From assembly GCF_030028105.1 (NCBI RefSeq), contig NC_092377.1, forward strand, positions 126,622,242-126,686,241: 64,000 nt of DNA, read 5' to 3'. The DNA comes from Mobula birostris (Eukaryota). Position numbers and translations under genes: made by a program. Shown here piece after piece: positions 14,431-61,560 of this stretch (positions are counted from its first letter, which is position 1; each line of letters opens with the position of its first letter). The notes below the pieces were generated by a model. The model ran no database searches, was not told the origin of the DNA, and saw nothing but the letters and a program-made list of their open reading frames with translations.

Positions 14431-14452
14431 TCACGAGCCACACATTCCGCAC
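14431..14452 (-). CDS. Gene A exon 6 (short tail, W-CGMCGS-stop)
   Basis: Acceptor cttctgttctacatgcag, homologous to the gene B acceptor cctctgttgtacctccag. Phase 2 matches the TM exon; TGA at 14433-14431. Confidence 0.6.
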
Positions 14453-14614
14453 CTGCATGTAGAACAGAAGGCCATATGGAGAGTCTGAACACACGGTGAG
14501 ATGGGGAGGGGGTTAACAGCTGGACGGGGAACTGAAGAACGGAAGGGGTACAGCGAAGGAACGAATGGGGAGCTCTGGAACAGAGATTCTCCAGGAATGG
14601 ATGTGGTCACTTAC

Positions 14615-14660
14615 CAGAGAAAGAGAAGCACAACCACAGGCACACAGACTCCCACTGTCA
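14615..14660 (-). CDS. Gene A exon 5 (transmembrane, VTVGVCVPVVVLLFL)
   Basis: tttctgttccccag acceptor, GTAAGT donor, 46 nt (phase 1 to 2). Flanks are homologous to the gene B TM exon. Confidence 0.75.
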
Positions 14661-15559
14661 CTGGGGAACAGAAATATTACAATTAGAGCAAATTGAGCAG
14701 AAACGTCCAGTATAGATGTGGAACAGTCAGTTTACATCCACCCCTCACCGTGCAGTTCCATCTATTCCATTGTGCACTCTGATTGGGATCGATGGAACCG
14801 GGTGGTCTTGCCGATGTTGTTTGTTGCTTCTTCTGTTCTGATTTGAATATTTACTGCAGACACCAGAATGTGTGGTGACAATTGCAGGCTGCCCCCGCAC
14901 CTCCTTCGGCTGTTAGTCGTTAACACAAACGATGCATTTCACTGTATGTTTCAATGTACATGGAACAAACACAGAGAATACAAATTCTCCCACCCTATCC
15001 CACTGCATTTTGTGTCAAGAAATATATCCATCGCCTTATGTGTCAAGTAAGTGTTTTGTACGCAGTGGCACAGGTAGACAGGAGTGCTGGCCTTCGTCAG
15101 TCAGGAGATTTACAATATTGATCACCCTGCTGTTGGACAGATGCCGTTCAGCTGCAATGAGAGCCGAGGGGATTTGACAATGTTGCCCAGACTCAAGGGA
15201 CGGAGCTATTGAGAGAAGCTGAACTCGTTGGGATTTTATTCACAGTAGTGCTGGAGACTGAGAGGTGATCTGAGAGAGGGGCATAAAATTTGAGGGATGC
15301 AAATAAGGTGAACACATTCTTCTGAACCCGAGTTGTGGAATCGAGGAGACAGGGGTTTAAAGTGAAAAGAAACATTTAAAAGGGAGCACAGGGTTGAGAA
15401 AAATCAGCCGCTGTTCAAATGGCAGCACAGACTCAATGGGCTGAATGGCCTTATTCTGCCCCCCTGCCCTCTGTTGTCAAACTGCCCAGCACTGCAACGG
15501 GGAAAAGAGCAGGAGGAGGGGAGAGACCCACTCACTTCTGAGAGTCATTTAAACCTCAC

Positions 15560-15703
15560 CTCGAATTCCCATCAGCATAATAATATCCCGCGTTTCTCCT
15601 CTTTTGGAACTGTCTGTCCTGGTGGACACAATCTCAGAATTCGTCACCGGTGGCGAGGTGGACGTCCCATACGCCACTGTCTCCTGTCTGGGAATCTCCG
15701 AAC
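15560..15703 (-). CDS. Gene A exon 4 (S/T/P-rich stalk, GSEIPRQETVAYGTSTSPPVTNSEIVSTRTDSSKRGETRDIIMLMGIR)
   Basis: cgacag acceptor, GAG|GTGAGG donor, 144 nt symmetric phase 1. Paralogous exon at 34233-34380. Confidence 0.75.
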
Positions 15704-15901
15704 CTGTCGAACATGATGGGTATACCTCAGTGCTGAGCTGCTCTCCCCAGATCCCCAAGTAACTTGGGCCAAAGTGCCTGTTCCTGTGCTATGCTGTTCT
15801 CAGTCTAGAGTCTCTCTCTAGTAGCACGGACAGAATATACATCGGAGTGGTTGCAGTCTGGAGTATCAGACCCTCCCTCTCCCTCTGCCATCGGCACTTA
15901 C

Positions 15902-16150
15902 CTGATGTGTTGTTGGTGATCTCACAGTAGACGGTGCGAGGGATAACCCGGGTGTAGTTCAGGGTGACTCTGTCAGCTTCCACCCTGGCCTGGCTGGCAA
16001 TCTGACAGTGGAGTTCGTTGCCTTTGTCTCTAGTACAGGTATCCTGGAACATTTCGAGCTTGTGAAGCCATAGGATCTGGGACCAGGATATTGTGCAGGG
16101 ACAGCTGAGGGAGATGGGTTTTCGAATGAACTTACAGAGGCCATGATCAC
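15902..16150 (-). CDS. Gene A exon 3 (83-aa, 6-Cys atypical Ig-like ectodomain)
   Basis: ctcctgacag acceptor, CAG|GTAAGT donor, 249 nt open, phase 1-1: GDHGLCKFIRKPISLSCPCTISWSQILWLHKLEMFQDTCTRDKGNELHCQIASQARVEADRVTLNYTRVIPRTVYCEITNNTS. N-glycosylation sequons NYT, NNT, NTS. Confidence 0.85.
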
Positions 16151-16467
16151 CTGTCAGGAGAGGAGTATCGTGGTCAGTGGGTTCAGAGGGAGATCATCCT
16201 CCCCTTCATAGAGTGGTTCCCTATACACTGCCCCATCACAGCCCCAGGGTCAGACAAAGAATGAATCTCTCCCTCTCCCTACTGCCCCATAATACCATAC
16301 TGGAACCAGATACAGGGTGAAACTCCCTCTGCAATGTCCTATTGCCCACTCCATGGGTCAGATGAAATGCAGTTCCCTGCACACTGTCTCGTCACAGGGA
16401 TTAGACCCAGAATGACTCTCACTCGACCCTGGACACAGAATCTCCCTCAATCCTACGTTGTACTTAC

Positions 16468-16514
16468 CAGCAGCAGATCTGACCATGAACAGCAACACAC
16501 AGACTGCGATGGAC
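16468..16514 (-). CDS. Gene A exon 2 (signal peptide core, RSIAVCVLLFMVRSAA)
   Basis: cactcctcag acceptor, GTAAGT donor, 47 nt (phase 2 to 1). A 47-nt paralog lies at 36013-36059. Confidence 0.85.
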
Positions 16515-17169
16515 CTGAGGAGTGAACTCTACGGTACCTGACCCCACCTCAGACAGGAGCTGTCAACAACTGCTAGAGTTTAGTTATGAAAAGCTGAAAC
16601 TGTCCAGCCAGCAGCCTGATCTTAAATGTTCCTTTGTGATTGGATTTAATGGAAAACCATGGCCGAATTGGGATCAGTCAGTCAGCCTGTCCGTGTGCGG
16701 GGTCAGTTGTGTGGTTTTGACTCTATTGTATATTTTGACGAGGTGGAGGGTGACTGATGAGGTCTGGACAGTGGATATTGCCTACATGGACTTAAGCAAG
16801 GTATTTTACAGAGTCCCTGATGGGAAGCTCATCCAGTTTAAGGTACGTGGCATCCAGAGTGAATCGGCTGTTTGGATTTAGAACTGGCTTGCCAACATCA
16901 GACAGAAGGTAGAGGTTGATGGGATGTGTTCTGACTGGAAGTATTTGACAGTGGTATTGTGCAGGGATCCATACTGGGACCTGAGCTGGATGAAACTGTG
17001 GATGTATAGGTCAATATACTTGGAGACGATGGCCGATGGAATCCAGTCCAGGCAATTGTGTGGTATTGGGTGTTTGTGAGATGAAATTTAAAGGGACAGT
17101 GCATGTTAATTGCCAGACCTTACTAAAATCCATGTCGGCAACATCTGTACGGTCTCCCCTCTCTCGCAC

Positions 17170-19150
17170 GCGCTCTCACAGGCATTTCAAACACAATTTC
17201 GCCATGCAGGAACACTGGCTTTCTCCTTCCAGTCATTCCTTGTTAACATTCATTGAAACTATACCTCGACATTGTTTTATCCCCCCCTTGTTCAATCCCT
17301 TCCACCTATGTTCGTGACACTTCTCACGCTTTGAATTTTTTCAATGATTTTAAGTTTCCTGCCTTATTTTCACCATGGATTTCCAGTTTCTATATACCTC
17401 CATCTCCCATCAGGAAGGTCTCAAAGCTCTCTGCTTCTTTTTGGATTCCAGAGCTAACCAGTTCCCCTCTATCACCACTCTCCTCCCACTAGTGGAATTA
17501 GTCCTTACTCTTAATAATTTCTCCTTTGGCTCCTCCCACTTCCTCCAAGCTCTTGGTGTAGCCATGGGCACCCGCATGGGTCCCAGCTATGCTTGCCTTC
17601 TTGTTGGCTTTGTGGAACAATCCATGTTCCAAGCCTATACTGGTATCCGTCCCCCACTTTTCCTTCGCTACATTGACGACTGCATTGGCGCTGCTTCCTG
17701 CACGCATGCTGAGCTTGTTGACTTCATTAACTTTGCCTCCAACTTTCACCCTGCCCTCAAATTTACCTGGTTCGTTTCTGACACCTTCCCCACCCCCTTT
17801 CTTGATCTTTCTGTCTCTGTCTCTGGAGACAGCTTATCTACTGATGTCTACTATAAGCCCACAGACTCCCACAGCTACCTGGACTATTCCTCTTCCAAAC
17901 CCTCCCTCTTGCAAAAATGCTATCCCCTTCTTGCAATTCCTCTGTCTCCGCCGCATTTGCTCTCAGGATGAGGCTTTTCATTCCAGGATGAAGGAGATGT
18001 CTTCCTTTTTTAAAGAGAGGGGCTTCCCTTCCTCCACCATCACTCTGCTCTCAAACACATCTCCCCCATTTCACACACATTTGCTCTCATCCCATCCTCC
18101 CACCACCCTACTAAGGATAGGGTTCCCCTTGTCCTCACCTTCCATCTCACCAGCCTTGGGGTCCAACATATAATTCTCCATAACTTCCGCCACCTCCAAT
18201 GTGATCTCACCACCAAGCACATCTTTCCCTTCCTCCCTCTTTCTGCTTTCTGCAGGGATCGCTCCCTACGCGACTCCCTTGTCCATTCATCGCCCCCCTC
18301 CCTTCCCACTGATCTCCCTCCCAGCACTTACCCTCGTAATCGGAACAAGTGCTACACATGCCCTTACACTTCCTCCCTCACCACCATTCAAGGCCCCAGA
18401 CAGTCCTTCCAGGTGAGGCGCCACTTCACCTGTGAGTCAGCTGGGGTGATATACCGCGTCCGGTGCTCCCGGTGTGGCCTTTTATATATTGGCGAGACCC
18501 GACACAGACTGGGAGACCACTTTGTTGAATATCTACGCTCTGTCCGCCAGAGAAAACAGGATCTCCCAGTGGCTACACATTTTAATTCCACATCCCATTC
18601 CCATTCTGATATGTCAATCCATGGCCTCCTCTACTGTAAAGATGAAGCCACACTCAGGTTGGAGGAACAACATCTTATATTCCGTCTGGGTAGCCTCCAA
18701 ACTGATGGCATGAACATTGATTTCTCTAACATGCGTTAATGGCCCTCCTCACCTGCTTACCCCATCCCTTATATAGTATTTTCCTTTTTTTCCTCTCTCT
18801 CTGTCCCTCTCACTATCACTCCTTGCCTGCTCTCCATTTCCTCTGGGCTCCCCTACCCATTTCTTAAAGACAAAATACTCTGCAGATGCTGGGGTCAAAA
18901 CAACACTCACAACATGCTGCCCGATCTGCTAAGTTCTTCCTTCCCCTTTCCTTTTCCCTGGGCCTCCCGTCCCATGATTCTCCCCCTTCTCCATCCCTTT
19001 GCCAATCAGCTTTCCAGCTCTTAGCCTCATCCCTCCCCCTCCCACTTTCAAATACCTTACTCTGTCTTCTTTCAGTTAGTCCTGCTGAAGGGTCTCGGCC
19101 CGAAACGTCGACTGTACTTCTTCCTATAGATGCTGAGTTCCACCAGGTGT
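17170..19150 (+). mobile_element. Penelope-like retroelement (RT plus GIY-YIG, frameshifted) in gene A intron 1
   Basis: GVAMGTRMGPSYACL and FLRYIDD RT motifs; VIYRVRCSRCGLLYIGETRHRL GIY-YIG; pLTR with a mutated hammerhead core (CTGCTGA) at 19078-19113. Confidence 0.9.
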
Positions 19151-19674
19151 GTGTGTGTGTTTGTGTGTTGATTCAATGAAACTGTCCAGAACATTCCCCT
19201 AGCGCTGATAGGTCGAGCCTTGTTGAGCCACGCCTTCTTCCTGCCGGTGCCGGAACCCTCACGAGTCCCCCTCCCCACCCCAACAGGGGTACCCAGGCAT
19301 TTCAAACAATCTCGCTGTGCAGGAACACCGGCTTTCTGCTTCTGGCCCCCGCCAACATGTGATGCAATTCCTGTGATCCCACCTCCCACCACGGATCTGA
19401 GCGCTGATCGGTGCAGCCTGACAACTCACCATCTACCCACCAACGTGGGTAATCAACAAACTTTGCAGTTACCGCTCTCCGCGATCCCCTCTCTCTCCTC
19501 CCACCCCCACCCCCGTTCCGGCCGCTCTCTCTCTCTCCCTCCCGCTACGGCACGGGCATGTCATCGGTGCGGCTCCCATTACCAACCCGACTCCGTCCAG
19601 AACCCCACTTCGCCAATAACCGCTTAGTGTTGTATGAAAGAACAACTTCACCGTCACGATCCCGGGACCTTTAC

Positions 19675-19712
19675 CTGAGGGTGTTTGACTGTAGGACGGC
19701 GGAGACAGCCAT
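19675..19712 (-). CDS. Gene A exon 1 coding part (MAVSAVLQSNTL)
   Basis: ATG in gaaATGG context, CAG|GTAAAG donor, 38 nt phase 2, in frame with exon 2. CpG-rich surroundings. Confidence 0.75.
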
Positions 19713-19950
19713 TTCAAACACACTGTCGCTGAAATGGACACACAGACACCGGCTCGCTGCTTTTAAAAGTGCCAGTTCCGAAGTGACCTCCCAAACGCTC
19801 TGACGGGTGGAGCCTTGCGCCCAACCCTCCCGTTGGCGTCCTCCCCTCTGTACGTGTTTCGGCATCACGCTGTACGGACACCACGATCTGAGTTTAGCCA
19901 CGCCTTCTCTACATCTTCTTCCCGCACGAACTTCCTAAGTGACCAGCTTG

Positions 19951-20075
19951 CGCTGATTAGTAGAGCCTGTGGTAACTCACCACCATCATCTTAATTAAGT
20001 AAATTCTGCATTCAGCGCGCAAAATGACTTGGCGCCATTATATACAAACAAAATTTACCTGTAACATATTCATTA
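19951..20075 (-). promoter_or_regulatory. Gene A upstream block with E2F-like motifs, conserved with 23044-23105 and 40001-40084
   Basis: gcgcgcaaaa and ttggcgcc at 20014-20036, followed by aaaatttacctgtaa shared with the 23 kb copy. cgctgattag here versus cgctgattgg at 40001. Confidence 0.45.
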
Positions 20076-21549
20076 GTATCTTACTGCATTTTCAGCGGAT
20101 GGAAGTCATTGGGGGGACATAATTCAGATACTGGGACAGAACCGGGCCAGCATTAGCGTTGGGAGGTGGGATGGGCGGGGCAGTGTTTCAGAAAGACAGT
20201 GTCCATTATTAAGCACCGACCCCCTCACCCAGGACGTGCCCTCTTCTCATTGCTACTACAGTCAGGAGGTACAGAGGCCTGAATGCACACACTTAGCGTC
20301 TCCCCCTCTGCCATCTGATAATCTGAATGGACATTGAACTCATGAATACTATCTCACTTTTATTATTTCTGTTTTTGCGCTATTTTTAATATAACTAATT
20401 AATATCATATATACTGACTGTAATTCTTCTCTATTATGTCTTGAATTGTACTGCTGCTGCTAAGTGAACAGATTTCACGACATTTGTGGGTGATTTAAAG
20501 ACTGATTCTGACTACTCGCCTGTTAACTGTCAATCGCTGACACATGTTCCTGAGTTTGTTTTACTTTGCCTTCTTTACCGCCCTATCAGTCTGCGTGGAA
20601 AGTGGCGGGAGCAACTGACTCGGACTCGGAGATTCATCTTCCCAACTGTGAGGGTCTCACCATTAATGGTGTACCAGCACTGTGATCTCCCAAAGAGCAA
20701 CACCTCACACTTGACCAAATTAAACTCCAAATGCCATTTGTAGATCCATTGGCCGTATCTGCAACTGATCTACATCCCACTGTATCCTTTGCCAGACTTT
20801 ACACTATCCACAACACCAGTGAGCTGTCTACCAACCACCCAGCTATATTCTCATCCAAGTCCTTTCTATTATCACCGACAGTTTGGGTCCCAGAGAGATC
20901 CCTGTGGAAGACCAGTACACATGGGTCTCCAGCCACTACTCTGATTTCTATGAAACCAAATGGCCAATTCACTGTGGATCCCATGTATCTTAATCTTCTG
21001 GACAAGCATCTTGTCAAATGCATAACTAAAAGTCATGCAGACAATATCCACAGTTCGACCTTCTATCACCCTTGTCACCTCATCAAAAAACTGAATCAAG
21101 TGAGCGAGACACAATTTGTCACACACAAAGCCAGAGTGCTTGGGCCTGAGCACCCACTCCAGCAATTTGCCTACCACTGACGTGAGACTCACTGGTCTAT
21201 AGTTTCCAGGATTGTTCCTATATCCCTTCTTAAGTAACAGATCAACAGCAGCTTCTCAATACTCCTGTGGCCGGAGAGGACATGAAGATATTTGTCAAAG
21301 CCCCAGCAATCTCCTCTCTTGTCTCTGTCACCAATCTGCTATATCACATCAGGCCATGGGGGCTTATCGACATTCATGTTTTTCAAATACCCAAATCTAC
21401 CTCCAGGGGTGTATATTGAGATGTCCCAGTAAATTAGCTCAGTTCACACTGATCTCACTGTCCTCCTTGGTGAATACTGATGGAAATTACTCATTTAGGA
21501 CTTTGCCCACAGCCTCCAGCTCCAAACACAGGTCGTATCCTTAATCCGT

Positions 21550-22030
21550 CAGTGTCCCTATGCTCCTGCTCTTACTGTCTGTGTAGAGAGTGTTGGATGC
21601 TCTTTCGTCCCATACCAGGCGGTCAGCGCACTTTCCACCACACGTCTATAGACGTTTGCTAAGGTGACATGCCAAACATCGGGAGATTCCCGAGGAAGTA
21701 GAGGCACTGCCGTGCTTCCGCAATAATATTTATATGATGGGTCCAGGACAGGTCCTATGAGATAGTGACACCTAGGGAATTTAAAATTACTGACCCTCTC
21801 CACTGCTGATCCTCCGATGATTACTGGTTCATGGACCTCTGGTTTCCCTCTCCAAAAGTCCACAATCAATTCCTTGGCCTTGTTGACATTCAGTGAGAGG
21901 TTGTAGTTATAACACCACTCAGCCAACTTTCCTCCCTGTAGGCTGATTCATCACTCCCTTTGATGGAGCCCACAACACTGGTCTCATCAGCAAACTTGTA
22001 GATGGTGTTGGAGCTGTACTTACCACACGG
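21550..22030 (-). mobile_element. Rex/Babar-like LINE fragment
   Basis: WCYNYNLSLNVNKAKELIVDF...VERVSNFKF motif. Confidence 0.75.
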
Positions 22031-22584
22031 ATCTCTCACAACATCCAGCGTTCCCAGACTTGGGCATCCTTGTCCTCTGTACAGGGAGCATATCTGTCCT
22101 GTACTCTGTGAAATTGGTCTTTACACACCCTCCACAGGTCAGATGTGGACTTGCCTAAAGACTCCTGTTCCCGATTGACTCTCCCTAGTTCCTGCTTCAG
22201 TATCTTGTAATTGGCTGTGTTGTAATTTAATATTATTGCACGATCTGTGCTTGCCCTTATCGGTAGCTATCTTAAAACTTGTTACTGTTCCCTGACAATT
22301 CTTCAATGGGAATGTCAGTCACCTGGCCAGGCTTTTTACACAACTCCAGGTCCAGTATCAACCCTTCTGGATGCAACTAACAAATGCTGTCCTCTTTAAT
22401 CTCTTTTGTCTCAGTCTATATTGGAGCAATTGAAATCACCCACGGCAACAGAATGATTATACCTTCACTATTTTGAGTAAATTTCGCAGTCCCTTCCAAA
22501 CTACTCTCCCAAGTAACTACTGGGTGCACTTCCCACAGATGTAGCCACTGGGGAGGCCGTGAGACAAGACCGTAAGACACAGGG

Positions 22585-22710: not shown

Positions 22711-22836
22711 GATGTGTCGCCAGTACGGGTATCTGACCCCTTCACCAACCCGACCCATCACAACGTCGCTGTTTTGGCAATAATGCTCTGGTAGTGTCCG
22801 ACAGTACAACCACCGTCACGATTCCGGAACCTTTAC

Positions 22837-22904
22837 CTGAGGGTATTCAGCTGTGGGATGATGCTGTGCACCCGGTGGGAGGGAGTAAATGCTCCAATCC
22901 CCAT
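22837..22904 (-). CDS. Extra intact first exon of the A/B family (MGIGAFTPSHRVHSIIPQLNTL); possible alternative exon 1 of gene A
   Basis: gtgATGG start, same CAG|GTAAAG phase-2 donor, E2F-like site at 23044-23053. I found no dedicated exon 2 between it and gene A. Confidence 0.55.
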
Positions 22905-23299
22905 CACTGCCGCTGTGGGGAGGCGCCAGCTGTACTGCTGGGCCCTCCCACATCTGATTTGTTCTAGCAGGCCCCGCTCCAGTACAGCCTGATGTCGCTC
23001 ATGATTCAGGTCATCTGAACATCGCGGTGATCAACAAACTTCAGGGCGCGAAAAAATATTGGCGCCACAACGCACAAGCAAAATTAACCTGTAAAATGTT
23101 CATTTGTGTCTTGTACATGGGGATTGGGGAAAAGTTTGGGAGAGTAGGTGGGATCCATGGAGTAGGGGAGAGACCCACTCACTGCTGGGGTCATTTAACC
23201 CTTTCTGAACCCGACTCCTCCAGCAGTTCACTTCATGGCCCAGGTTCAGAATGAGAACCTGCCCCTTAGTTTCTATTGAACCTCCTTTCTCTGACCTTG

Positions 23300-30890: not shown

Positions 30891-31274
30891 AAACAACTGC
30901 ACCATGAGACAGGGTGGTGAAGAAGGCGTGTAGCGTAATTGCCTTCAGAGATCAGAGTATGGAATATAAAAGCTGGGATGTTATGTTAGAACTTGGCAAG
31001 ATACTGGTCAGACTGCACTGGAATCACTGTGTATTCAGCTGACTGCACTACAGGAAGGCTGGTCTCACATTGGAGGGAGAGCCGAGGAGATACACTTTGA
31101 TGTTGTCTGGATCGGGTGGTGGGGGCTTTAGTCACGTGGAGTGATTGAACGGGTCAGAGCAGATTCCTCTGGAGTGTCGGAGGCTGAGGGGAGACCTGTT
31201 GGACGTGCTACTTGAGATATCGACACTTCTGATGGTGGGATCTCTCTGTGCGTTGACACCCTGTGCATCTCTAT

Positions 31275-31302
31275 TCAGGCCGACATTCTCTGACGATGTC
31301 TC
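31275..31302 (-). CDS. Gene B exon 6 (tail, W-RHRQRMSA-stop)
   Basis: cctctgttgtacctccag acceptor; phase 2 gives a basic stop-transfer sequence and TGA at 31277-31275. Confidence 0.65.
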
Positions 31303-31469: not shown

Positions 31470-31518
31470 CACAGAATGAGAACCAGGGCATCAAGTAGAA
31501 TGACTCCCACCACCACCA
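31470..31518 (-). CDS. Gene B exon 5 (transmembrane with Asp, VVVVGVILLDALVLIL)
   Basis: ttccattctacag acceptor, GTAAGT donor, 49 nt (phase 1 to 2). Confidence 0.75.
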
Positions 31519-34232: not shown

Positions 34233-34380
34233 CTGGAATTACTATCTCCATATGTGCAACTCGTAGTGGTGTTCCACACCTGTCATCTGTCTGTCTCAGT
34301 GGACACTGGCATCTGAGATGTAATCTGTGGTGGCATAGACAACTGGTCTACTAGTGTCCTCTGCCTGGGACACTCCACGC
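34233..34380 (-). pseudogene. Gene B exon 4 (stalk) with +4 nt frameshift and in-frame TGA at 34285-34283
   Basis: gtgtttgcag acceptor, CAG|GTGAGG donor, 148 nt versus 144 nt in gene A. Reads GVECPRQRTLVDQLSMPPQITSQMPVSTETDR-stop. Confidence 0.7.
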
Positions 34381-35208: not shown

Positions 35209-35460
35209 CTGATGTGCCGAAGCTGATTTCACAGTAGGTAGTGCGGGGGATAACCCAGCTGTAATTCAAGATAACATGGTCAGCATCCACTCTGGCCTGG
35301 CTGGCGTTTCGACAGCAGAGGCTGTTCCCCTCCCCCCTGGTGCAGACATCTCTGAAGGGTCCTCCAATGTCGTGAAGGTGCAGGCTCTGTGCAGCAGTCG
35401 GAAAACAGGGGCAGCTGAAGGAGCTGGTGTCTGGAGTGAAATGGCAGGTGCCATGCTGAC
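35209..35460 (-). CDS. Gene B exon 3 (84-aa Cys-rich atypical Ig-like ectodomain)
   Basis: ctctcgacag acceptor, CAG|GTAAGT donor, 252 nt open: GQHGTCHFTPDTSSFSCPCFPTAAQSLHLHDIGGPFRDVCTRGEGNSLCCRNASQARVDADHVILNYSWVIPRTTYCEISFGTS. Confidence 0.85.
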
Positions 35461-35529: not shown

Positions 35530-35995
35530 GCACCCCACCATCCCATCACACAACCCTGGGGTCAAACACAGAGTGAAGCTCCCTCCCCACCATCCCATCC
35601 CACACCCCCAGGCTCAGACACGGAGTGAATCTCCCTCCCCACCATCCCATCACGCACCCCCGGGGTCAGACACAGAGTGAAGCTCCCCCCACACTGTCCC
35701 ATCACATGCTCCGGGGTCAGACACAGAGTGGAGCTTCCCCCACACTGTCCCATCACACACACCCCAGGGTCAGACACAGCGTGAATCTCCCTCCACACCG
35801 TCCCATTACACACTCCCAGGGTCAGACACAGAGTGAAGCTCCCTCCACACCGTCCCATCACACACCCCCAGCGTCAGACACAGAGTGAAGCTCCCCACTG
35901 TCCCATCACACACCCCTGGCGTCAGACACAGAGTGAAGCTCCCCACCATCCCATCACACACTCCCGGGCTCAGACATAGAGTGAAGCTCCCTCTA
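35530..35995. repeat. Minisatellite, ~46-bp unit (ggggtcagacacagagtgaagctccctccccaccatcccatcacacaccc), about 10 copies, filling gene B intron 2
   Basis: Direct tandem repetition is visible. Confidence 0.9.
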
Positions 35996-36012
35996 CACTG
36001 GGGTATACTTAC

Positions 36013-36059
36013 CAAGAACAGATCTGACAGTTATCATGGAGACACAGACTGCAAGGAAT
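36013..36059 (-). CDS. Gene B exon 2 (signal peptide core, RFLAVCVSMITVRSVL)
   Basis: ctttctccctcctcag acceptor, GTAAGT donor, 47 nt (phase 2 to 1). Confidence 0.85.
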
Positions 36060-39870: not shown

Positions 39871-39932
39871 CTGAGGGTATTCAGTTGTGAGATGATGCCG
39901 TGACCGAAGGAAGCAGCCGCTCCTAACCCCAT
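39871..39932 (-). CDS. Gene B exon 1 coding part (MGLGAAASFGHGIISQLNTL)
   Basis: gtgATGG start, CAG|GTAAAG phase-2 donor, CCAAT box (attgg 40006-40010) and E2F-like TTTTCGCGCCC (40074-40084) upstream. Confidence 0.75.
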
Positions 39933-47841: not shown

Positions 47842-48090
47842 GGTCGGTGTGTGAGAGAGAGAGACGGACGGTCGGTCCGTGTGTGAGATAGAGTGGTGGG
47901 GACAGTCGGTGTCTGAAAGAGAGAGACTGTCAAACTCCAGCCTCGGCTCAGCACAGTTTCACTACACAGACTCTTCGCCTATGCCTCACCTTGCCCTAAT
48001 GGGACTCCTGCTCCAGGATCCCCACTTTGGCAATCGCTGCCCTCTGTTGTCGGAAGAAAAACCTCACCATCCCGATCCTGGGATCTTTAC

Positions 48091-48120
48091 CTGAGGGTAT
48101 TCGGCTGTGGGATGATGCCA
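48091..48120 (-). pseudogene. Truncated relic of the A/B-family first exon (GIIPQPNTL)
   Basis: Same donor and intron flank as the other three copies; the upstream part is replaced by a CR1 fragment and there is no in-frame ATG. Confidence 0.65.
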
Positions 48121-50300: not shown

Positions 50301-50329
50301 AGTTAGTAAGGCATTTATTGTTACTTTAT

Positions 50330-52900: not shown

Positions 52901-52984
52901 CCGCAAGAGGAGGTACTTCAGGAAGTGTCCTGGGTCCGCCAGCAGTGATGGGGCTTTTTCTCCGCTGCCGCTGTCGCTGTCGCC

Positions 52985-53139
52985 TCAGAGTCCGCACTTT
53001 ACGGAACGACCGCCAGGGGGCGCTCGGTGCGCGGGTTCGCTGTTGCTCTTTGGGAGCCGGTACACGGTGGTCAGGACTAGGAGAGCGAGCGCCTTCAGGA
53101 CGAGCAGGATGTAAAAAGGCAGTGGCTCCCGAGGAGAAC
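52985..53139 (-). CDS. Gene C exon 4 (short stalk, TM with Lys, tail without Tyr motif)
   Basis: atttactctcag acceptor, phase 1: GSPREPLPFYILLVLKALALLVLTTVYRLPKSNSEPAHRAPPGGRSVKCGL-stop. Confidence 0.85.
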
Positions 53140-53379
53140 CTGAGAGTAAATCGGAGTTCAGAGTGAGACGGTTTACCGAGGCGAGCTAGGGATGGGTTGT
53201 ATTCTGAGGGTTCAGGGGTTTATATATTGAATAACATTGCTGCGAGTGGGTTACAGGGTGGGATGTAATCCAAGCGTTCTGGGTGAGGGGGTTATATATG
53301 AAATAACAGAACTGGACCTGCGATCCAATCCCAGGAGGAATCAGGGAAGTGGCGGTGAAAGGTGATACCGGCGATTTAC

Positions 53380-53739
53380 CTCGTACCAGGACCACGGTCC
53401 CGTTCCCTCGGAGCAGCAGCTGCCGGTCGGGAAGATGAACGGACGCCAGGCAGTGATAGGTGTTGGAGTGGCTCGGTCGGAGGTGCCGAAGTTGGAGGGA
53501 GAGTCCCGTGCCGATCCCACTCTCAGGGAGAGCATCTTGCTGCCGGGATCCCTCGGGGGGCGGATAGACGACACGTTCCTCTCCCTCCTCCTCTGTCCCG
53601 CCGACCACCCAATAGGGGTAGATGATCACCCGGGACTCCGTCAGCCCCAGAACTTCGCAGTGCAGCGTCACGTTGGAGCCACTCGGGACCTCCAACCTCC
53701 GAGGCCACTGGGACACGGAGAGGGTGGCGAGCGAGATGT
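53380..53739 (-). CDS. Gene C exon 3 (V-J-type Ig domain 2, CD28H/TMIGD2- and NKp30-like)
   Basis: 360 nt phase 1-1, GAG|GTAAAT donor. SVSQWP, VTLHC, YW, LSLQL, YHC and J-like GNGTVVLV motifs. Confidence 0.92.
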
Positions 53740-53945
53740 CTGTAACACATGGAGAGAGAGAGAGGGAGAGCGAGAACGGTGAGCGAGCGTCTGTAACACA
53801 TGGAGAGAGAGAGAGGGAGAGTAGTGAGGGAGCGTCTGCAACACAGAAAGGGAGGGAGTGGTGTGAGGGAGCGTCTGTAACACAAGGAGGGAGAGAGTAG
53901 TGAGGGAGGGTCTGAAACACAGGGAGGGAGAGAGTCTGTACAGAG
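53740..53945 (-). repeat. ~40-50-bp tandem repeat of the splice-acceptor unit upstream of V2 (related array at 55352-55625 upstream of V1)
   Basis: Each unit is a pyrimidine tract plus tgtgtt(a/g)cag followed by acgctc. Confidence 0.85.
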
Positions 53946-54991
53946 AAAGAGGATGGGGGGGCAGAGATTAAACGTGGAGTGATATCAAACTGTAAGGAAA
54001 GAGTTAAACATGATTCGTCCTTGGTAAGTGCTAAAATAAAAAGGAAGTCTGCCAGACAACATGGTGTTAACCCGGAGCGGAACTGATTTGAGAAAGTTGA
54101 ATGAGTACAAGTCTCCAGTCTGGAGAGTAGATCATGATGAATACAAGTTTGTGTCAGGAAGGTGAGGCCTTTGGCCAGGTACCGAACAGTGACCCAGCAG
54201 GGAGAGTTCTGTGGTACGAGTTATGTTCGAGTTTTAAAGGGATACTGAAGGGTGTAGGTACGGGTAAATCTTTCTGCAAGTGGGGAGAATTTTCCATCAG
54301 AGCACGTTAGGACCAGTGATAACGGTAAGAGTTCGGGAAGATAGACACAGTTACGTCCAGAGAGAGAGAGAGAGTTTTCCATCCGGCATTTGCAGATCAG
54401 CTCGTTCAGTGGACGGGAAGTGTTTGTTTTTCGCTACATCATTAACCCTTCTTTTTCCTTTTTGCATTGCATGGTTACATAGTTCTAATAAAACAATTTA
54501 TTGCAGTTTAACACGTGTACAGGTGTCCTCTTTGTTTGCAAATACAGACCCGAGTGCTTATTGCTAACGCAGGAAAGAACACAACGAATTTTTAAACAAT
54601 TATCGTTAGGCAAGCACAACCCGAAATCGGGCAAACTCTGCCTAACACCTCCATTTTCCCCATGTCCCTCCTCCCATTCATCCCGTTTCCATGACATTTC
54701 CCTCTCGTCCTCAGGCGTTCCCTGCTCCCTCTCTCCCAACCCAAGTCCCATTTCCACATCCCACTCACAACTCCACCATTCCCCACTCGCACAATTTGTA
54801 CACAGACACACACACAAATAGATACACTGATATACTCCCCAAGATCGGGTTACAGATGGAATCTTCCCCAGCGCTTCGACGGAAATGTATCTATGGAAAA
54901 ACTGCACCGAATATGGGATCAGCTCCCAGGAATGATGCGGGAATCTGGGGGCAGCTTGCAGGGAACGAGGGCAGTGGGACCGGAGACTCAC

Positions 54992-55351
54992 CTCGTACCA
55001 GGAGCACGCTCCCGTTCCCTCGGAGCAGCAGCCGCCGGTCGGGAAGGTGAACGGACGCCAGGCAGTGGTAGGTGTTGGAGTGGCTCGGTCGGAGGTGCCG
55101 GAGTTGGAGGGAGAGTCCCGTGGCGATCTCACTCTCAGGTAGGGCGGCTTCCTGCCGGGATTCCTCTGGGGCCGGGTAGACGACACGTTCCTCTTCTCCC
55201 TCCTCCGTCCCGCCGATCACCCAATAGGGGTAGATTATTAACCGGGGCTCCGTCAGCCCCAGAACCTCGCAGTGCAGCGTCACATTGGAGCCACTCGGGA
55301 CCTCCAACCTCCGAGGCCACTGGGACACGTAGAGGGTGGCGAGGGAGCTGT
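54992..55351 (-). CDS. Gene C exon 2 (V-J-type Ig domain 1)
   Basis: 360 nt phase 1-1, GAG|GTGAGT donor; 16 of 120 residues differ from domain 2 by manual alignment. Confidence 0.92.
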
Positions 55352-55990
55352 CTGTAACACAGTGAGAGAGAATAGTGAGGGAGCGTCCGTAACACATAGA
55401 GGGAAGGAGAGGGAGCGGTGGATGAGAGAGTTCATGTAACACAGTGAGGGAGGGGGAGTGGCGAGTCTGTAATACCTGGAGAGAGAGTAGTTAGGGAGCG
55501 TCTGTAATACAAGGAAGGAGGGAGTGGAGTGAGGGAGTGTCTGTAACACAGGGAGGGAGAGAGTAGTGAGGGAGCGTCTGTAACACAGGGAGGGAGGGAG
55601 TAGTGAAGGACCGTCTGTACACAGGAAGAGGATGGGAGGGGCAGAGATTAAATGTGGAGTGATATCAAATTGTAAGGAAAGAGTTAAACATGATTCGTCT
55701 TTGGTAAGTGCTAAAATAAAAAGGAAGTCTGCCAGACAACATGGTGTTAACCCGGAGTGGAACTGATTTGAGAAAGTTGAATGAGTACAAGTCTCCAGTC
55801 TGGAGAGTAGATCATGATGAATACAAGTTTGTGTCGGGAAGGCGAGGCCTTTGTCCAGGTACCAAACAGTGATCTATCAGGGAGAGTTCTGGGGTAAGAG
55901 TTATGTCAGAGTTTTAAAGGGATATTGTAAGGGTGTAAGTACGGGTAAGTCTTTGTTTAAGTGGGGAGAATTTTCCATCAGACCACGTTA

Positions 55991-58900
55991 AACTAGATTT
56001 GCAGGTGGAGGGGAATCAGAGTGTTAGAGCAGATAGTGAAGTGGAGGAGGATAAAGGTCATGTGAGAACAGCAAGTATAGTGCATGGAGTAAAGCCAGTC
56101 TAACATATAAACATGCTTTGAGGAAAGAGAAACAGAATAAAGGATGTAAAGGTAGTAAGGTAGAAGGGCTAAAGTGTGTGTACTGCAATGCAAGAAGCGT
56201 CAGGAGCAAAGGTGATGAACTGAGAGCTTGGAAACATGCATGGAATTTTGATGTCGTGGCCATTACAGAGACTTGGCTGGCACCACGGCAGGAATGGATA
56301 CACAATATTCCTGGATTTCAGTGCTTTCAAAGAGATAGAGAGGGGGGAAAAGGGGAGGAGGGGTGGCATTATTGGTCAGGGATACTATTACAGCTACAGA
56401 AAGGGTGGGCAATGTCGCAGAATCCTCTTTTGAGTCAGTATGGGTGGAAGTCAGGAACAGGAAGGGAGCAGTTACTCTACTGGGGGTATTCTATAGGCCC
56501 CCTGGTAGCAGCAGAGATACCGAGGAGCAGATTGGGAGGCAGATTTTGGAAAGTTGCAAAAATAACAGGGTTGTTATCATGGATGACTTTAATTTCCCTA
56601 ATATTGATTGGCACCTGATTAGTTCCATTGGTTTAGACGAGGCAGAGTTTGTTCAGTGTGTCCAGGACAGATTCCTGTCACAGTATGTTGACAGACCGAC
56701 TGGGGGGGATGCCATACTAGATCTAGTATTAGGTAAAGAACCGGATCAGGTCACAGATCTCTCAGCGGGTGAGCATATGGGGGACAATGACCATCGCTCC
56801 CTGGTCTTTAACATTATCATGGAAAAGGATAGAATCTGAGCGGACAGGAAAATCTTTAATTGGCGAAGGGCAAATTATGAGGCTATAAGGCTAGAACTTG
56901 CGGGTGTGAATTGGGATGATGTTTTTGCAGGGAAATGTACTATGGACATGTGGTCAATGTTTAGAGATCTCTTGCAGGATGTTAGGGATAAATTTGTCCC
57001 GGTGAGGAAGATAAAGAATGGTAGGATGAAGGAACCAATGGTGACAAGTGAGGTGGAAAATCTAGTCAGGTGGAAGAAGGTAGCATACATGAGATTTAGG
57101 AAGCAAGGATCAGATGGATCTATTGAGGAATATAGGGTAGCAAGAAAGGAGCTTAAGAGGGGCTGAGCAGAGCAAGAAGGGGGCATGAGAAGGCCTTGGT
57201 GAGCAGGGTAAAGGAAAACCCCAAGGCATTCTTCAGTAATTTGAAGAACAAAAGGATGACAGGAGTGAAAATAGGGCCGATTAGAGATAAAGGTGGGAAG
57301 ATGTGCCTGGAGGCTGTGGAAATGAGCGAGGTCCTCAATGAATACTTCTCTTCGATATTCACTAATGAGAGGGAACTTGATGATGGTGAGGACAATATGA
57401 GTGATGTTGATGTTCTGGAGCATGTTGATGTTAAGGGAGAAGAGGTGTTGGAGTTGTTAAAATATATTAGGATGGGTAAGTCCCCGGTGCCTGACGGAAT
57501 ATTCCCCAGGCTGCTCCACGAGGCGAGAGAAGAGAATGCTGAGCCTCGGGCTAGGATCTTTATGTCCTCATTGTCCACGGCAATGGTACCGGAGGATTGG
57601 AGGGAGGCGAATGTTGTCCCCTTGTTTAAAAAAGGTAATTGGGATGGTCCGGGTAATTATAGACCAGTGAGCCTTACGTCTGTGGTGGGAAAGCTGTTGG
57701 AAAAGATTCTTAGGGATAGGATCTATGGGCATTTAGAGAATCATGGTCTGATCAGGGACAGTCATCATGGCTTTGTGAAGGGAAGATCGTGTCTAGCAAA
57801 CCCGATGGAGTCCTTTGAGGAGGTGACCAGGCATATAGATGAGGGTAGTGCAGTGGATGTGATCTATATGGATTTTAGTAAGGTATTTGACAAGGTTCCA
57901 CACGGTAGGCTTATTCAGAAAGTCAGAAGGCATGGGATCCAGGGAAGTTTGGCCAGGTGGATTCAGAATTGGCTTGCCTGCAGAAAGCAGAGGGTCGTGG
58001 TGGAGGGAGTACATTCGGATTGGAGGGTTGTGACTAGTGGTGTCCCACAAGGATCTGTTCTGGGACCTCTACTTTTCGTGATTTTTATTAACGACCTGGT
58101 TGTGGAGGTAGAAGGGTGGGTTGGCAAGTTTGCAGATGACACAAAGGTTGGTAGTATTGTAGATAGTGTAGAGGTTTCTCGAAGATTGCGGAGAGACATT
58201 GATAGGATGCAGAAGTGGGCTGAGAAGTGGCAGATGGAGTTCAACCCGGAGAAGTGCGAGGTGGTACACTTTGGAAGTACAAACTCCGAGGCAGAAAACA
58301 AAGTAAATGGCAGGATACTTGGAAGTGTGGAGGAGCAGAGGGATCGGGGGGTACATGTCCACAGATCCCTGAAAGTTGCCTCACAGGTAGATAGGGTAGT
58401 TAAGAAAGCGTATGGGGTGTTAGCTTTCATAAGTTGAGGGATAGAGTTTAAGAGTCGCGATGTAATGATGCAGCTCTATAAAACTCTGGTTAGGCCATAC
58501 TTGGAGTACTGTGTCCAGTTCTGGTCACCTTACTATAGGAAGGATGTGGAAGCATTGGAAAGGTTACAGAGGAGATTTACCAGGATGCTGCCTGGTTTAG
58601 AAAGTATGCATTATGATCAGAGATTAAGGGAGTTAGGGCTTTACTCTCTAGAGAGAAGGAGGATGAGAGGAGACATGATAGAGGTGTACAAGATATTAAG
58701 AGGAATAGATAGAGTGGACAGCCAGCGCATCTTACCCAGCGCACCACTGCTCAATACAAGAGGACATGGCTTTAAGGTAAGGGGTGGGAAGTTCAAGGGG
58801 GATATTAGAGGAAGTTTTTTTATTCAGAGAGTGGTTGGTGTGTGGAATGCACTGCCTGAGTCAGTGGTGGAGGCAGATACACTAGTGAACTTTAAGAGAC

Positions 58901-59031
58901 TGCTAGACAGGTACATGGAGGAATTTAAGGTGGGGAGTTATATGGGAAGCAGGCTTTAAGGGTCGGCACAACATTGTGGGCCGAAGGGCCTGTACTGTGC
59001 TGTACTGTTCTATGTTCTATGTTCTGTGTTA
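55991..59031 (+). mobile_element. 5'-truncated CR1 LINE in gene C intron 1
   Basis: YCNARSVRSK, VFYRPP, HGFVKGRSCL and KFADDTKVG motifs, (gttctat)n tail. The empty site is visible in the duplicated intron at ~54301-54320. Confidence 0.93.
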
Positions 59032-59396
59032 CGACCAGTGATAATGAGAAGAGTTGGGGAAGATAGAGACAAGTGTGGTGAGGGAGCGTCTGTATTTCCG
59101 GTGAGGGAGTGGAGCGGGGCAGAGAGTGACCCGGATGCAGCGTCCAAAACAGCTCGAAGTCAGGCAGCTTCTGCTCAACATCAACCAGCACCTCTCCCCA
59201 CGATCCATGACCTTTCCTGAATCCATGACATTCCCCTGTCAACAACACACACCCCTTCTCCTTCTCCACTACATTGACAGCCTAACTCTTTCACCCCCAA
59301 ACGACGGAAATTCTTCCCAACACTCCGACCCTTCATGCATACTATCACTCTATGGGGAGCTGGCCCCACAGACACAGACTCTTTCTGTCATTTTCT

Positions 59397-59464
<68 letters not shown>

Positions 59465-59506
59465 TACATACATACACGTGTCCCGAGCAGTATGAGAGGT
59501 TCTTAC

Positions 59507-59552
59507 CCAATAGCAGGAGGAGCAAGATCAGTTTTCGAAGCTGCGCCCTCAT
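59507..59552 (-). CDS. Gene C leader exon (MRAQLRKLILLLLLL)
   Basis: gcgATGA start, G|GTAAGA phase-1 donor joining in frame to DSSLA-TLYVSQ; acceptor ccccctcag at 59582. Confidence 0.85.
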
Positions 59553-59599
59553 CGCCCGAAGTATTTTCAATTAACACATCTCTGAGGGGGCAAAAAGAA

Positions 59600-60340
59600 A
59601 TATCTTAGCATAGTTTCGCCGGGCCGAAGGGACATAATACCTTGCTGTAGTGAAAATAATGATCTGTATGGACATGAATTTCTGAACAAATTTCCGTGTC
59701 TTCGGTGATATACCAAATCTCATCAAACTCCTAATGAAATATATACACCGCCGCATCTTTGTAATTGCATCGATATGCTGGGCCCAGTCTAGATCCTCAG
59801 AGATATTGACACCCAGGAACTTGAAATTGTTTACTCTTTCTTCTTCTGATCCCTCTGTGATGACTGATGTGTGTCCCCTTGTCTTACCCTTTCTGAAGTC
59901 TTTCTGAGATTGAGTGCAAGGTTGTTGCTGTGACACGACCCAACAAGCTGATACACCTCGCTCCTGTACGCCCTCTCGTCACCATCTGCGATTCTGCCAA
60001 CAATAGTTGTACCATCTGCAAATTTATAGGTGGCATTTGAGCTGTGAGGGTGTAGAGAGCATAGAGCAGTGGGCTAAGGACACGTCCCAGAGGGGCGCCG
60101 GTGTTGTCAGCGAGGTGGAAATGTTATTTCCAATTCAGACAGAGAGATTGTGGTCTCCAGTTCAGTAAGTCGAGGATCCAGTTGCAGAGGGAGGTATAGA
60201 GGCCCTGGTTCTGCAGCTTGTTGATCAGAACTGCAGGACAGATTGTGTTAATTGTTGAGCTGTAGTCAATAATCAGCATCCTGTCACAGGTATTTGTATT
60301 GTCCACGTCATCCACGGCCGTGTGAAGAGTCTTTCAGATC
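59600..60340 (-). mobile_element. Rex/Babar-like LINE fragment
   Basis: IDYSSTINTICP...LCNWILD and ERVNNFKFLGVNISEDL motifs. Confidence 0.8.
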
Positions 60341-60689
60341 GCATCCGCCGTAGACCTTCCTCAACCCGTCCCTTTCCAATCTACGTTTATCTCTCTCTCT
60401 CTCTTTCTCTCATTTTTCTGCCCTTTTGTTTTTCTCTCTCGTTTCCAATCTCGGGATCTCACTCCCCTACTACCCCAAGATATTTTTCCAGCCCACACTC
60501 CCTCCTTATGTCTTTCGCTCTCTCTTCTTCACCCCATCCTCCTCTTCACTTTTCTCCTCCTCTCTCTCTGCTCCCTCGCTTTCCCTGCACCCCCACTCAC
60601 ATCCCCCACCTCCGCCTGGTGTCATCTACACATCCTGTTCACCACGTCTCCCCCTCTGCTGTGTTTCGCTGTGACTAATTCACTGACCG

Positions 60690-61560
60690 CACTCTGGCAG
60701 GCCAGTTCCGTCCGCAGTACAGTAACTGTGTGTGGTGCGGACTCTGTGACAACACTCCCACCCGATTTGCTTCAGCGCTACCGGGTCTCAGCGGCACTAC
60801 ATGATCCCGGGCACCGGAAGATGGCCCGGCAGTTATACAAATGGGAACGGGAACCTCTTTCTCCTGAGTTACCTCACTGGTCGTGCGATCCCTCACTTGC
60901 CCTGTCTCCTCACCGCCCCTCCCGCTGTGGTTCCTCAGCCGAGGAGTTCAAACTGATCTGCACCGAGAATCGCCATCTTTGTGATTCAAATCAGGGAGAC
61001 AAGACACAGAGAGAGGGAAAGAGCAAGGGCGAGAGCGATGAAGAGAAAGAGGGAGGGAGATGGGGTCATGGAGATGTGGGGAGACAGAAAGAAGTGGTTA
61101 GGGTTAATGGAGACGGAGAGACAGGCAAATACTCACCGAGCTCCGGGCCGCCATCAGCTCCTCACCCGACCCCTGCTCATAGGCTGTCCACTGAGTTCAG
61201 TCAGCGCCTCCGACCTGTCGCTCCCTTCCGCACCAGGCGAGCTCTCCGCTTCGGTTGGCACCAGCCGATCCCACTGGAACTGCTTTCCTCTCGGGGTCGA
61301 GCGCTGGCGCTCCGGACGCCCGATACGGGAGGAGCAGCGGCCGCTCAGCCGGGACAGGAAGGTGCGGCAGCGAAAATCAGCTCCCCTTTCACTGTCTGAC
61401 GTCCTGTCCGGGGGCCGGACTGTACCTGACCGTCCGGAAACTCATAACACCGTTCCATCGGAAGTGGGGGGCGGGTGGAATAGCCGCCCTGAGGTGGACC
61501 GAGGGAGAAAACTTGAAGAGGGAACGTCACGGAATAAGCGGCGAGTAGTGAGAAAGGGAG
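60690..61560 (-). promoter_or_regulatory. CpG-rich region, probable promoter and non-coding first exon of gene C (donor TCG|GTGAGT at 61137)
   Basis: Locally high CG density and a strong donor upstream of the leader exon. Confidence 0.5.

Follow-up and report, generated by a model that had tools for sequence, protein, structure and literature searches.

The window analysed here, a stretch of 64,000 nucleotides (nt) of the giant manta (Mobula birostris) genome on contig NC_092377.1, harbours three genes for predicted surface proteins, designated A, B and C. On balance, we read them as a cluster of ray-specific immunoglobulin-superfamily (IgSF) surface genes acting by the mechanism proposed at the end of this report, and an undescribed IgSF receptor cluster is a reasonable interpretation of the window. 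This reading is built on the gene structures, the transcription and splicing of A and B, the presence of C as a RefSeq model, the domain families, the restriction of A and B to batoids, and conservation.

All three genes lie head-to-tail on the minus strand, with GT..AG at every intron (Table 1). The original prediction, made from the sequence of the window, had described three co-oriented surface-protein genes with canonical splice sites, and this description holds. The predicted lengths of 181 amino acids (aa) for the product of gene A and 306 aa for that of gene C were recovered from the rebuilt exon models, and RNA contigs contain spliced transcripts of A and B. Literature searches on NKp30, sharks and B7H6, on immune receptors in the Mobula genome, and on DAP12 in batoids returned no description of genes A, B or C. 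Related genomes annotate the genes only as 'uncharacterized protein', in line with the proposal of an undescribed cluster.

Structure of gene C

Gene C (59552-52985) is already an automatic RefSeq model, and its translation is identical to P0027, which corresponds to RefSeq XP_072122252-4, "uncharacterized protein [Mobula birostris]". The exon plan was derived from four close unnamed ray proteins detected by a word-indexed search, after which the splice sites were read. The minus strand of the window carries two near-identical V-like stop-to-stop frames at 53.2-54.2 kb and 54.9-55.5 kb, and a hydrophobic frame with a lysine at 52988-53185. The layout of leader, V exons and Lys-bearing transmembrane (TM) segment is also annotated in M. 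hypostoma, Hemitrygon and Hypanus.

The two V domains reach Pfam V-set scores of 31.0 and 30.5 bits, against a gathering cut-off of 26, and the ortholog P0002 reaches 57 bits. The V hallmarks LHC...YPYW...YHC...GNGTVVLV, comprising the B-F cysteines, the C-strand Trp, the YxC motif and the J-like G strand, are invariant in 11 domains. The Lys of the membrane span FYILLVLKALALLVLTTVY is residue 8 of 19 hydrophobic residues and is kept in the proteins of all five species, and the last exon is near-identical in M. hypostoma P0002. In the tail, YRLPKSNSEPAHRAPPGGRSVKCGL, the sole Tyr lies at the membrane edge and has no Asn at +2. When the tail was read for the immunoreceptor tyrosine-based inhibitory motif (ITIM), the corresponding activation motif (ITAM) and YxNx, none was found. 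Two Pfam V-set matches and the Lys in the membrane span bear out the predicted two-V, TM-Lys receptor. Judged from its sequence, gene C has the build of a putative activating receptor: a basic residue sits in the TM segment, and the protein itself carries no signalling motif.

An alternative AG acceptor of the V2 exon, with an exon start at 53790, adds an in-frame linker of 17 aa, DARSPFSLSLSLSPCVT. An equivalent linker is present in Hemitrygon and Hypanus proteins (DAPSPFSLPHCVT). Short tandem repeats at 53740-53790 and 55352-55650, upstream of V2 and V1 respectively, each re-create a tgtgttacag acceptor. Upstream of exon 1, a minus-strand MAARSS frame has its ATG at 61154 and its exon end at 61137, followed by the donor GTGAGT (GT 61136-61135). 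Its exon end coincides with the upper limit given for the cluster in the original prediction, and the frame may be a 5′ exon of one of the three gene C transcripts in RefSeq.

Duplication and conservation of the gene C V exons

The V1 and V2 exons are 91.4% identical, with a synonymous divergence (dS) of 0.17, a nonsynonymous divergence (dN) of 0.064 and a dN/dS of 0.37 (Nei-Gojobori), which indicates purifying selection on both V copies. Eleven C-type V domains from four ray species of Mobula, Hemitrygon and Hypanus are 82-99% identical, and their stretch corresponding to complementarity-determining region 3 (CDR3) is wholly invariant. The cluster had been described as fast-evolving, a description that the V domains of gene C contradict in both their identity across species and their dN/dS.

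The manta V2 clusters with the V2 of M. hypostoma (support 100/97). Within each of the two dasyatid species V1 and V2 are 99% identical, a sign of recent duplication or homogenisation. A second C-type gene is present in both M. birostris and M. hypostoma, and one Hemitrygon isoform of the C-type gene uses three V exons. The Hypanus sabinus protein P0024, annotated as 'hemicentin-2-like' (1374 aa), consists of consecutive copies of the gene C V domain over its printed first 400 residues. By its length, P0024 probably holds about eleven V domains, either as a large V-exon array or as several genes merged by the annotator.

Structure and transcription of gene A

Gene A exons were found with the ray proteins P0005 and P0006 and with tblastn, and the six-exon model (19712-14431) yields the 181-aa product. 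The leader is split between two exons, and the apparent stop before exon 2 vanishes when exon 1 is joined to the acceptor at 16514. The joint between exons 1 and 2 is not among the RNA joints listed and rests on ortholog protein models. RNA evidence came from contigs of four runs listed as RNA, from one organism. The stalk exon is skipped in two of the runs (joint 14660/15902), a form also annotated for the M. birostris paralog (isoform P0005). The joint to the long-tail exon, with its acceptor before 14369, is not among the RNA joints listed. Contigs of three runs connect 14353 with 14176 through a joint that has non-canonical ends and four letters (TCAG) without a match, which may be an indel allele in the 3′ untranslated region (UTR) or an assembly artefact.

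The RNA contigs differ from the window by 2-5% over gene A. We considered an origin of these contigs from another species and rejected it, since the gene B exons match at 100% and gene C equals a M. birostris RefSeq protein; the differences were read as allelic or paralog variation. Run X2 encodes N-L-R-Q-F at 16050-16073, in the loop between strands C and C', where the window and the three other runs encode K-L-E-M-F. The X2 motif is that of the M. birostris paralog P0005, and the rest of the X2 contig is window-like. This suggests allelic variation or paralog gene conversion at one loop.

In most A/B relatives the stalk starts with E-C-P-R-Q and contains a conserved cysteine, where gene A has Ile. 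The resulting SEIPRQ in the gene A stalk resembles the E-I-P motif of CD28H. However, the family consensus is E-C-P-R-Q, with the Ile derived from cysteine, and the resemblance was dismissed as coincidence.

Structure and transcription of gene B

Gene B (39932-31275) has a broken stalk exon. The in-frame TGA and the length of 148 nt mean that inclusion of this exon truncates the product and shifts the frame. RNA contig X4 record 15 (512 nt) contains pieces of gene B exons 3 and 6 with 0 mismatches, 50 nt apart. This gap fits the 49-nt TM exon only; had the stalk been included, it would measure 197 nt. The gene B stalk is thus skipped in this contig. The stalkless product is an in-frame protein of 145 aa, composed of the leader, the six-cysteine domain, the membrane span VVVVGVILLDALVLILW and the tail RHRQRMSA. 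In the M. hypostoma ortholog a stalkless isoform is annotated as well (P0007), and the other isoform, P0020, has a short intact stalk. The prediction had opposed membrane to potentially secreted output in A and B. The membrane part stood, with the stalkless gene B receptor represented by X4 record 15 and, in M. hypostoma, by P0007, and the secreted decoy remained hypothetical.

As in gene A, the joint between exons 1 and 2 rests on ortholog protein models and not on RNA. Searches of M. birostris proteins returned none matching gene B, and none matching the domain exon of gene A at 100%. Intron 2 of gene B contains an array of ~60-bp tandem repeats (35540-36000) with an RNA word depth of up to ~1e6, which represents a dispersed transcribed repeat family and does not belong to the gene.

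The six-cysteine domain of A and B

Genes A and B share the unusual six-cysteine domain that had been noticed in the original prediction. The paralogous pair stands out among the minus-strand stop-to-stop frames as two cysteine-rich frames, one at 35.1-35.5 kb and the other at 15.8-16.2 kb. The two exons (82-83 aa) are 54% identical (E 1e-33), with dS 0.82, dN 0.39 and omega 0.47. Among 13 sequences, the cysteines at 5, 16, 18, 38 and 48 are invariant, and that at 75 is near-invariant.

A Pfam search of the domain gave no family at E up to 10, and a PDB sequence search with a profile of the 13 sequences gave no chain at E up to 10. HMMER with a four-sequence profile was run against 1.84 billion protein representatives. 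Eleven convincing proteins were found (P0005 and P0007-P0016; E 1e-8 to 3e-48), together with three weak repeat matches. The convincing proteins belong to Mobula hypostoma, M. birostris, Hemitrygon akajei, Hypanus sabinus and Pristis pectinata, and all are named "uncharacterized". No convincing six-cysteine protein from skates, sharks, chimaeras or bony vertebrates was among the matches. At the level of sequence, the A/B family thus appears as an orphan seen only in batoids.

AlphaFold2 modelled the domain from the 13-sequence alignment with nine strands, a predicted local distance difference test (pLDDT) of 88.8 and a predicted template-modelling score (pTM) of 0.75. Foldseek against the PDB returned CTLA-4, CD28, PVRIG, VH and T-cell receptor (TCR) V domains first; these matches are weak (E 0.12-0.5, query TM-score ~0.5). 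In the ESM Atlas, CTLA-4 clusters match the model with a TM-score of 0.62, and the AlphaFold-DB and viral structure libraries were equivocal. Those language-model neighbours of the domain that bear a family name are V-set. The six-cysteine exon ends 7 residues past the F-strand Cys, and in a model of the M. hypostoma ortholog with stalk, residues 89-126 have a pLDDT below 50, are disordered and form no G strand. Taken as a prediction from these models, the domain is likely a V-derived sandwich truncated after the F strand.

Compared with the V domains of CTLA-4, CD28, ICOS and PVRIG, A and B show no sequence similarity and lack a G strand, a conserved C-strand Trp, a PPP or MYPPPY-type motif and a tyrosine tail, and their leader is spread over two exons. 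Two other origins were tried. A diverged copy of the gene C V exon was rejected at the sequence level (hhalign probability 0.3%). Kinship to adenovirus E3 CR1 was likewise rejected: the Pfam Adeno_E3 match in one A/B relative (E 0.0011) is below the cut-off, only two of the eleven members match, and a search of the viral fold library returned nothing. To our knowledge, the cysteine spacings of Ly6/uPAR, TNFR CRD, sushi, Kunitz, saposin, BTLA and CD160 do not fit A and B.

Relationship of A and B to gene C

A/B-type and C-type genes share a record and carry adjacent locus numbers both in Hypanus (LOC132385339, LOC132385340) and in M. hypostoma (LOC134350231, 233 and 235). This suggests that the two types are neighbours in both, and likewise in Hemitrygon, where the accession numbers are close.

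A and B had been predicted to differ in TM charge. Gene B does carry an Asp in the membrane; the Arg of gene A, in contrast, lies at the outer membrane boundary and not inside the membrane. The further idea of a charge-paired activating and inhibitory set is not supported, as the gene B Asp is absent from B-type relatives (M. hypostoma P0007/P0020, Hemitrygon P0031 and P0032), and no ITIM or ITAM was found in any member of the A/B family.

A rather unlikely alternative is that A and B are non-immune, mucin-like adhesion or epithelial glycoproteins whose adjacency to C is incidental, with B a decaying pseudogene. The lack of a signalling motif or a conserved TM charge, the broken stalk exon of B, the A versus B omega of ~0.47, taken as relaxed constraint, and the M. 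birostris protein searches without a match to B or a full match to the A domain exon all speak for it. However, linkage of the A/B type with the C type is apparent in three or more further ray genomes, and the six cysteines are invariant or nearly so. The in-frame stalkless mRNA of gene B, which has 0 mismatches, and the likewise stalkless isoform P0007 of its M. hypostoma ortholog also speak against this alternative.

In M. hypostoma the isoform P0025 (LOC134350233 X3) continues from V1-V2 into VTVGVCVPVVVLLFLWCRMCGS, the ortholog of gene A exons 5-6. The corresponding join of V1-V2 to the gene A TM and tail is in frame in the window and would give 277 aa. P0025 may have arisen by read-through splicing with shared exons, or it may be an artefact of the gene model. 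In another protein of the same locus, P0028, the V2 donor is read through into the intron, presumably giving a soluble form. With P0025 and its in-frame manta equivalent, the phase 1 of all domain exons and the read-through isoform P0028 as evidence, the three genes could be partly one transcription unit, in which the V-V part of C is spliced either to its own Lys exon or to the uncharged TM and tail of gene A, yielding signalling and non-signalling forms. We consider this unlikely, as P0025 is a single automatic isoform model from another species, and the join in the window would bridge 38 kb and leave out gene B entirely.

Family placement of gene C

In PDB sequence searches, a single V domain of gene C and a profile of the 11 domains alike matched best with the V domains of antibody light chains and TCR-alpha, with shark VNAR and with SIRP-beta. 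The best E was 3.5e-5 for the single domain and 7.5e-4 for the profile, in which TCR-alpha and light-chain V led. No NKp30, CD28H or other CD28-family chain was among the best 60 PDB chains, either for the single domain (weakest E 0.015) or for the profile (weakest E 0.2). The protein-language-model neighbours of gene C belong to PD-1, "antigen receptor" and CTLA-4 clusters.

CD28H is defined by an E-I-P motif in CDR3, a YxNx tail and fsd1/stap2 synteny, and CD28HL3 by the CDR3 motif YxCxxxxx[IAVL]P and a tail with an ITIM or an immunoreceptor tyrosine-based switch motif (ITSM); CD28HL3 was not found in Chondrichthyes (PMC11599192). The CDR3-like stretch of gene C, CLASVHLPDR, has H-L-P where CD28H has E-I-P, and the tail has no YxNx. 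Its Y-H-C-LASVH-L-P satisfies the CD28HL3 motif, and the tail carries no CD28HL3-type ITIM or ITSM. A CD28H or NKp30 identity, and hence the B7 ligand suggested in the original prediction, is not sustained by these motifs or by the PDB ranking; the pathogen-sensing module suggested beside it is a conjecture.

Gene C could still descend from the CD28H or CD28H-like group, having lost the tyrosine tail and gained the TM lysine to become an activating counterpart. This is quite improbable. Like CD28H (TMIGD2), the gene C V domain has a proline at the same CDR3 position (H-L-P versus E-I-P), followed by GxG. The fit of the CDR3-like stretch to the CD28HL3 motif (PMC11599192), with L-P at the CD28H I-P site, and the PD-1 and CTLA-4 clusters among the language-model neighbours also point in this direction. 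On the other hand, gene C differs from CD28H and CD28HL1-3 in its two V domains, its TM Lys and the lack of E-I-P and of any tyrosine signalling motif, with neither YxNx, Y[ED]SF nor ITIM/ITSM in the tail. The described CD28-family members are all single-V, no CD28-family chain is among the best 60 PDB profile matches, and the reported absence of CD28HL3 from Chondrichthyes (PMC11599192) argues in the same sense.

Membership of the NKp30 (NCR3) family, with a B7H6-like ligand, is distinctly improbable. Gene C resembles NKp30/NCR3, UrIg and UrIg2 in having V and J in one non-rearranging exon, a GxGT G strand and an occurrence in elasmobranchs, and shares with NKp30 a charged TM residue and a short tail. 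Non-rearranging VJ genes, including NKp30, are known in cartilaginous fish (PMC10751288, PMC12227049). However, no NKp30 is among the best 60 PDB matches, and TCR-alpha, light-chain V and SIRP-beta rank above it. Unlike NKp30, UrIg and UrIg2, gene C has two V domains rather than one and no C1 domains. The TM residue of human NKp30 is Arg, whereas that of gene C is Lys.

Gene C is similar to the DAP12-coupled IgSF receptors SIRP-beta, activating KIR, TREM and NKp44 in being a predicted type I protein with an Ig ectodomain, a mid-membrane lysine and a short tail free of tyrosine motifs, and SIRP-beta 1 is among the PDB sequence matches of its V domain (E 0.0034). It differs in its two tandem V-J-type V domains with a 7-aa stalk, in place of V-C1-C1, D1-D2 or a single V. 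At the sequence level none of SIRP-beta, KIR, TREM and NKp44 is a close relative, and pairing of C with an adaptor is what we infer from the shared build. Teleost NITRs also have non-rearranging V domains with J-like motifs, in some cases a charged TM segment, and tandem clusters with birth-and-death evolution, similar to gene C. However, NITRs combine V and I-type domains and are not known outside bony fish, and the V domains of gene C are strongly conserved and not diversified. We therefore file gene C, as a classification from sequence, as a putative V-J-type IgSF receptor with an activating-type anchor, outside NKp30 and CD28H.

That A and B serve the two-V receptor C as its dedicated partners, forming a multi-chain ray receptor without counterpart elsewhere, is very improbable, although such pairing could proceed through the C Lys and the B Asp in the manta, through completion in trans of the open V-like sandwich, or through shared TM exons.

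Several points weigh against the preferred reading of a ray-specific IgSF surface gene cluster. The support for gene C is annotation in M. birostris and related species, and not RNA contigs. The stalkless mRNA of gene B is represented by a single spliced contig, from a run flagged 'probably DNA'. The canonical Ig Trp is not conserved in the A/B family, and the putative disulphides of the six-cysteine domain, 16-75 (B to F), 38-48 (C' to C'') and 5-18, follow from strand positions and not from coordinates. The strong conservation of the V domains in C argues against a pathogen-driven arms race, and is no proof of a host ligand. Adaptor coupling, ligand type, immune role and cell type are the parts of the reading that we infer.

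Additional family exons and genomic context

The extra first exons had been taken as signs of duplication and decay, and the two B-type copies, one intact at ~22.9 kb and one with lost phase at ~48.1 kb, agree with this view. Together with the V-exon copies of gene C, the picture is of a cluster that evolves through exon and gene duplication, homogenisation and decay. The match at 62243-62322 is either a relic or the 3′ terminus of another member of the family located outside the window. On the plus strand at 8806-8865, far from gene B and on the opposite strand, a 20-aa stretch matches the N-terminus of M. hypostoma P0007 at 90% (METTEAICIQGFRRGCGKSA); it is probably repeat-derived sequence that was annotated as an upstream exon.

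The window is vertebrate DNA, with a CpG observed/expected ratio of 0.46 and a single run of 129 N bases at 96-224. Debris of long interspersed nuclear elements (LINEs) and retroelements fills the window, and the flanks consist of transposon debris, with no flanking gene inside the window. LINE-type reverse-transcriptase/endonuclease frames (<=599 aa stop-to-stop) are located at 40.5-47.3 kb, in the spacer between C and B, and at 56.0-59.0 kb, in intron 1 of gene C.

Table 1. Exons of genes A, B and C and further family features in the window (positions counted from its first nucleotide)
Feature	Position	Strand	Remarks
Gene C exon 1	59507..59552	-	ATG 59552; leader MRAQLRKLILLLLLL; donor GT 59506-59505; model equals RefSeq P0027
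Gene C V1 exon	54992..55351	-	360 nt; phase 1 at both ends; J-like GNGSVLLV strand; Pfam V-set E 4.3e-7
Gene C V2 exon	53380..53739	-	360 nt; phase 1 at both ends; GNGTVVLV; Pfam V-set E 3.2e-7
Gene C last exon	52985..53139	-	7-aa stalk; TM span FYILLVLKALALLVLTTVY with central Lys; tail of ~25 aa; stop 52987-52985
Tandem duplication in gene C	53367..55990	-	~1 kb unit (V exon and ~650 bp of upstream intron); 55990-54979 versus 54309-53367, 85% nt identity (blastn)
Gene A exon 1	19675..19712	-	ATG 19712; MAVSAVLQSNTL; phase-2 donor AG/GTAAAG; matches leaders of P0010 and P0006
Gene A exon 2	16468..16514	-	signal-peptide core; RNA joint 16150/16469
Gene A six-cysteine exon	15902..16150	-	82 codons; RNA coverage and joints
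Gene A stalk exon	15560..15703	-	144 nt; Ser/Thr/Pro-rich; predicted disordered; optional; RNA joints 15701/15900 and 14660/15560
Gene A TM exon	14615..14660	-	VTVGVCVPVVVLLFL; RNA joints
Gene A short-tail end	14431..14452	-	W-CGMCGS and stop; RNA joint 14450/14613 in four runs
Gene A alternative last exon	14216..14369	-	acceptor AG before 14369; 51-aa tail; 225 aa in total, equal in length to Hemitrygon P0006; 75% identity by tblastn (E 1e-21)
Gene B exon 1	39871..39932	-	ATG 39932; MGLGAAASFGHGIISQLNTL; phase-2 donor; matches B-type leaders of P0007, P0023 and P0031
Gene B exon 2	36013..36059	-	hydrophobic core of signal peptide; RNA joint 35458/36011 in four of four runs
Gene B six-cysteine exon	35209..35460	-	83 codons; RNA with 0 mismatches; 89% identity with P0007/P0020 of M. 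hypostoma
Gene B stalk exon, broken	34233..34380	-	in-frame TGA; 148 nt (gene A: 144 nt); absent from RNA contig X4 record 15
Gene B TM exon	31470..31518	-	49 nt; VVVVGVILLDALVLILW with Asp
Gene B last coding exon	31275..31302	-	tail RHRQRMSA and stop; 3′ UTR to at least 31169; RNA covers 31169-31301 with 0 mismatches
Extra B-type first exon	22836..22916	-	MGIGAFTPSHRVHSIIPQLNTL; ATG, phase and donor intact; between genes B and A
Decayed first-exon copy	48056..48112	-	nt identity of 82% with exon 1 of gene A and its donor region; no longer in phase
Relic, or 3′ exon of a further A/B-type gene, on the upstream side of gene C	62243..62322	-	80 bp; 81% nt identity to gene A long-tail exon; peptide RQKILKFETGPTRLKDKL

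Proposed mechanism and significance

The product of gene C would be a type I membrane protein whose two V domains are non-rearranging and of V-J type, with hardly any stalk and a short tail free of signalling motifs. Its V domains may bind a conserved ligand, probably a host molecule. By analogy with adaptor-coupled receptors, the lysine would dock an Asp-bearing ITAM adaptor of the DAP12 or Fc-receptor-gamma type, which would carry the signal. The products of A and B are predicted to be small type I membrane glycoproteins, whose head would be a six-cysteine beta-sandwich of 82 aa, V-like and ending after the F strand. Alternative splicing would keep or drop a disordered, mucin-like stalk. As the stalk of most relatives contains a conserved cysteine, the splice choice would control how far the head stands off the membrane as well as disulphide dimerisation. 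With tails that are short, basic and free of tyrosine motifs, A and B are most likely ligands, co-receptors or adhesion partners, and not signalling receptors.

The gene models of A and B fill a gap, as the M. birostris protein searches returned no match to them. Practical value would be modest until an expressing cell type, an adaptor or a ligand is identified. No older lineage with antibody-type immunity survives than the cartilaginous fish, and ideas on the origins of antigen receptors give non-rearranging V-J genes a central place (PMC12227049, PMC10751288). Gene C would add to these a conserved, lysine-anchored tandem-V receptor of V-J type that is neither clearly NKp30 nor clearly CD28H, and whose V exon appears to have been repeatedly duplicated and homogenised, with two or three copies, and ~11 in a single model from Hypanus. 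If the predicted fold of A and B is right, their V domain is cut short after the F strand and placed on a splice-switchable stalk, which would make the family a compact case of Ig-domain remodelling.

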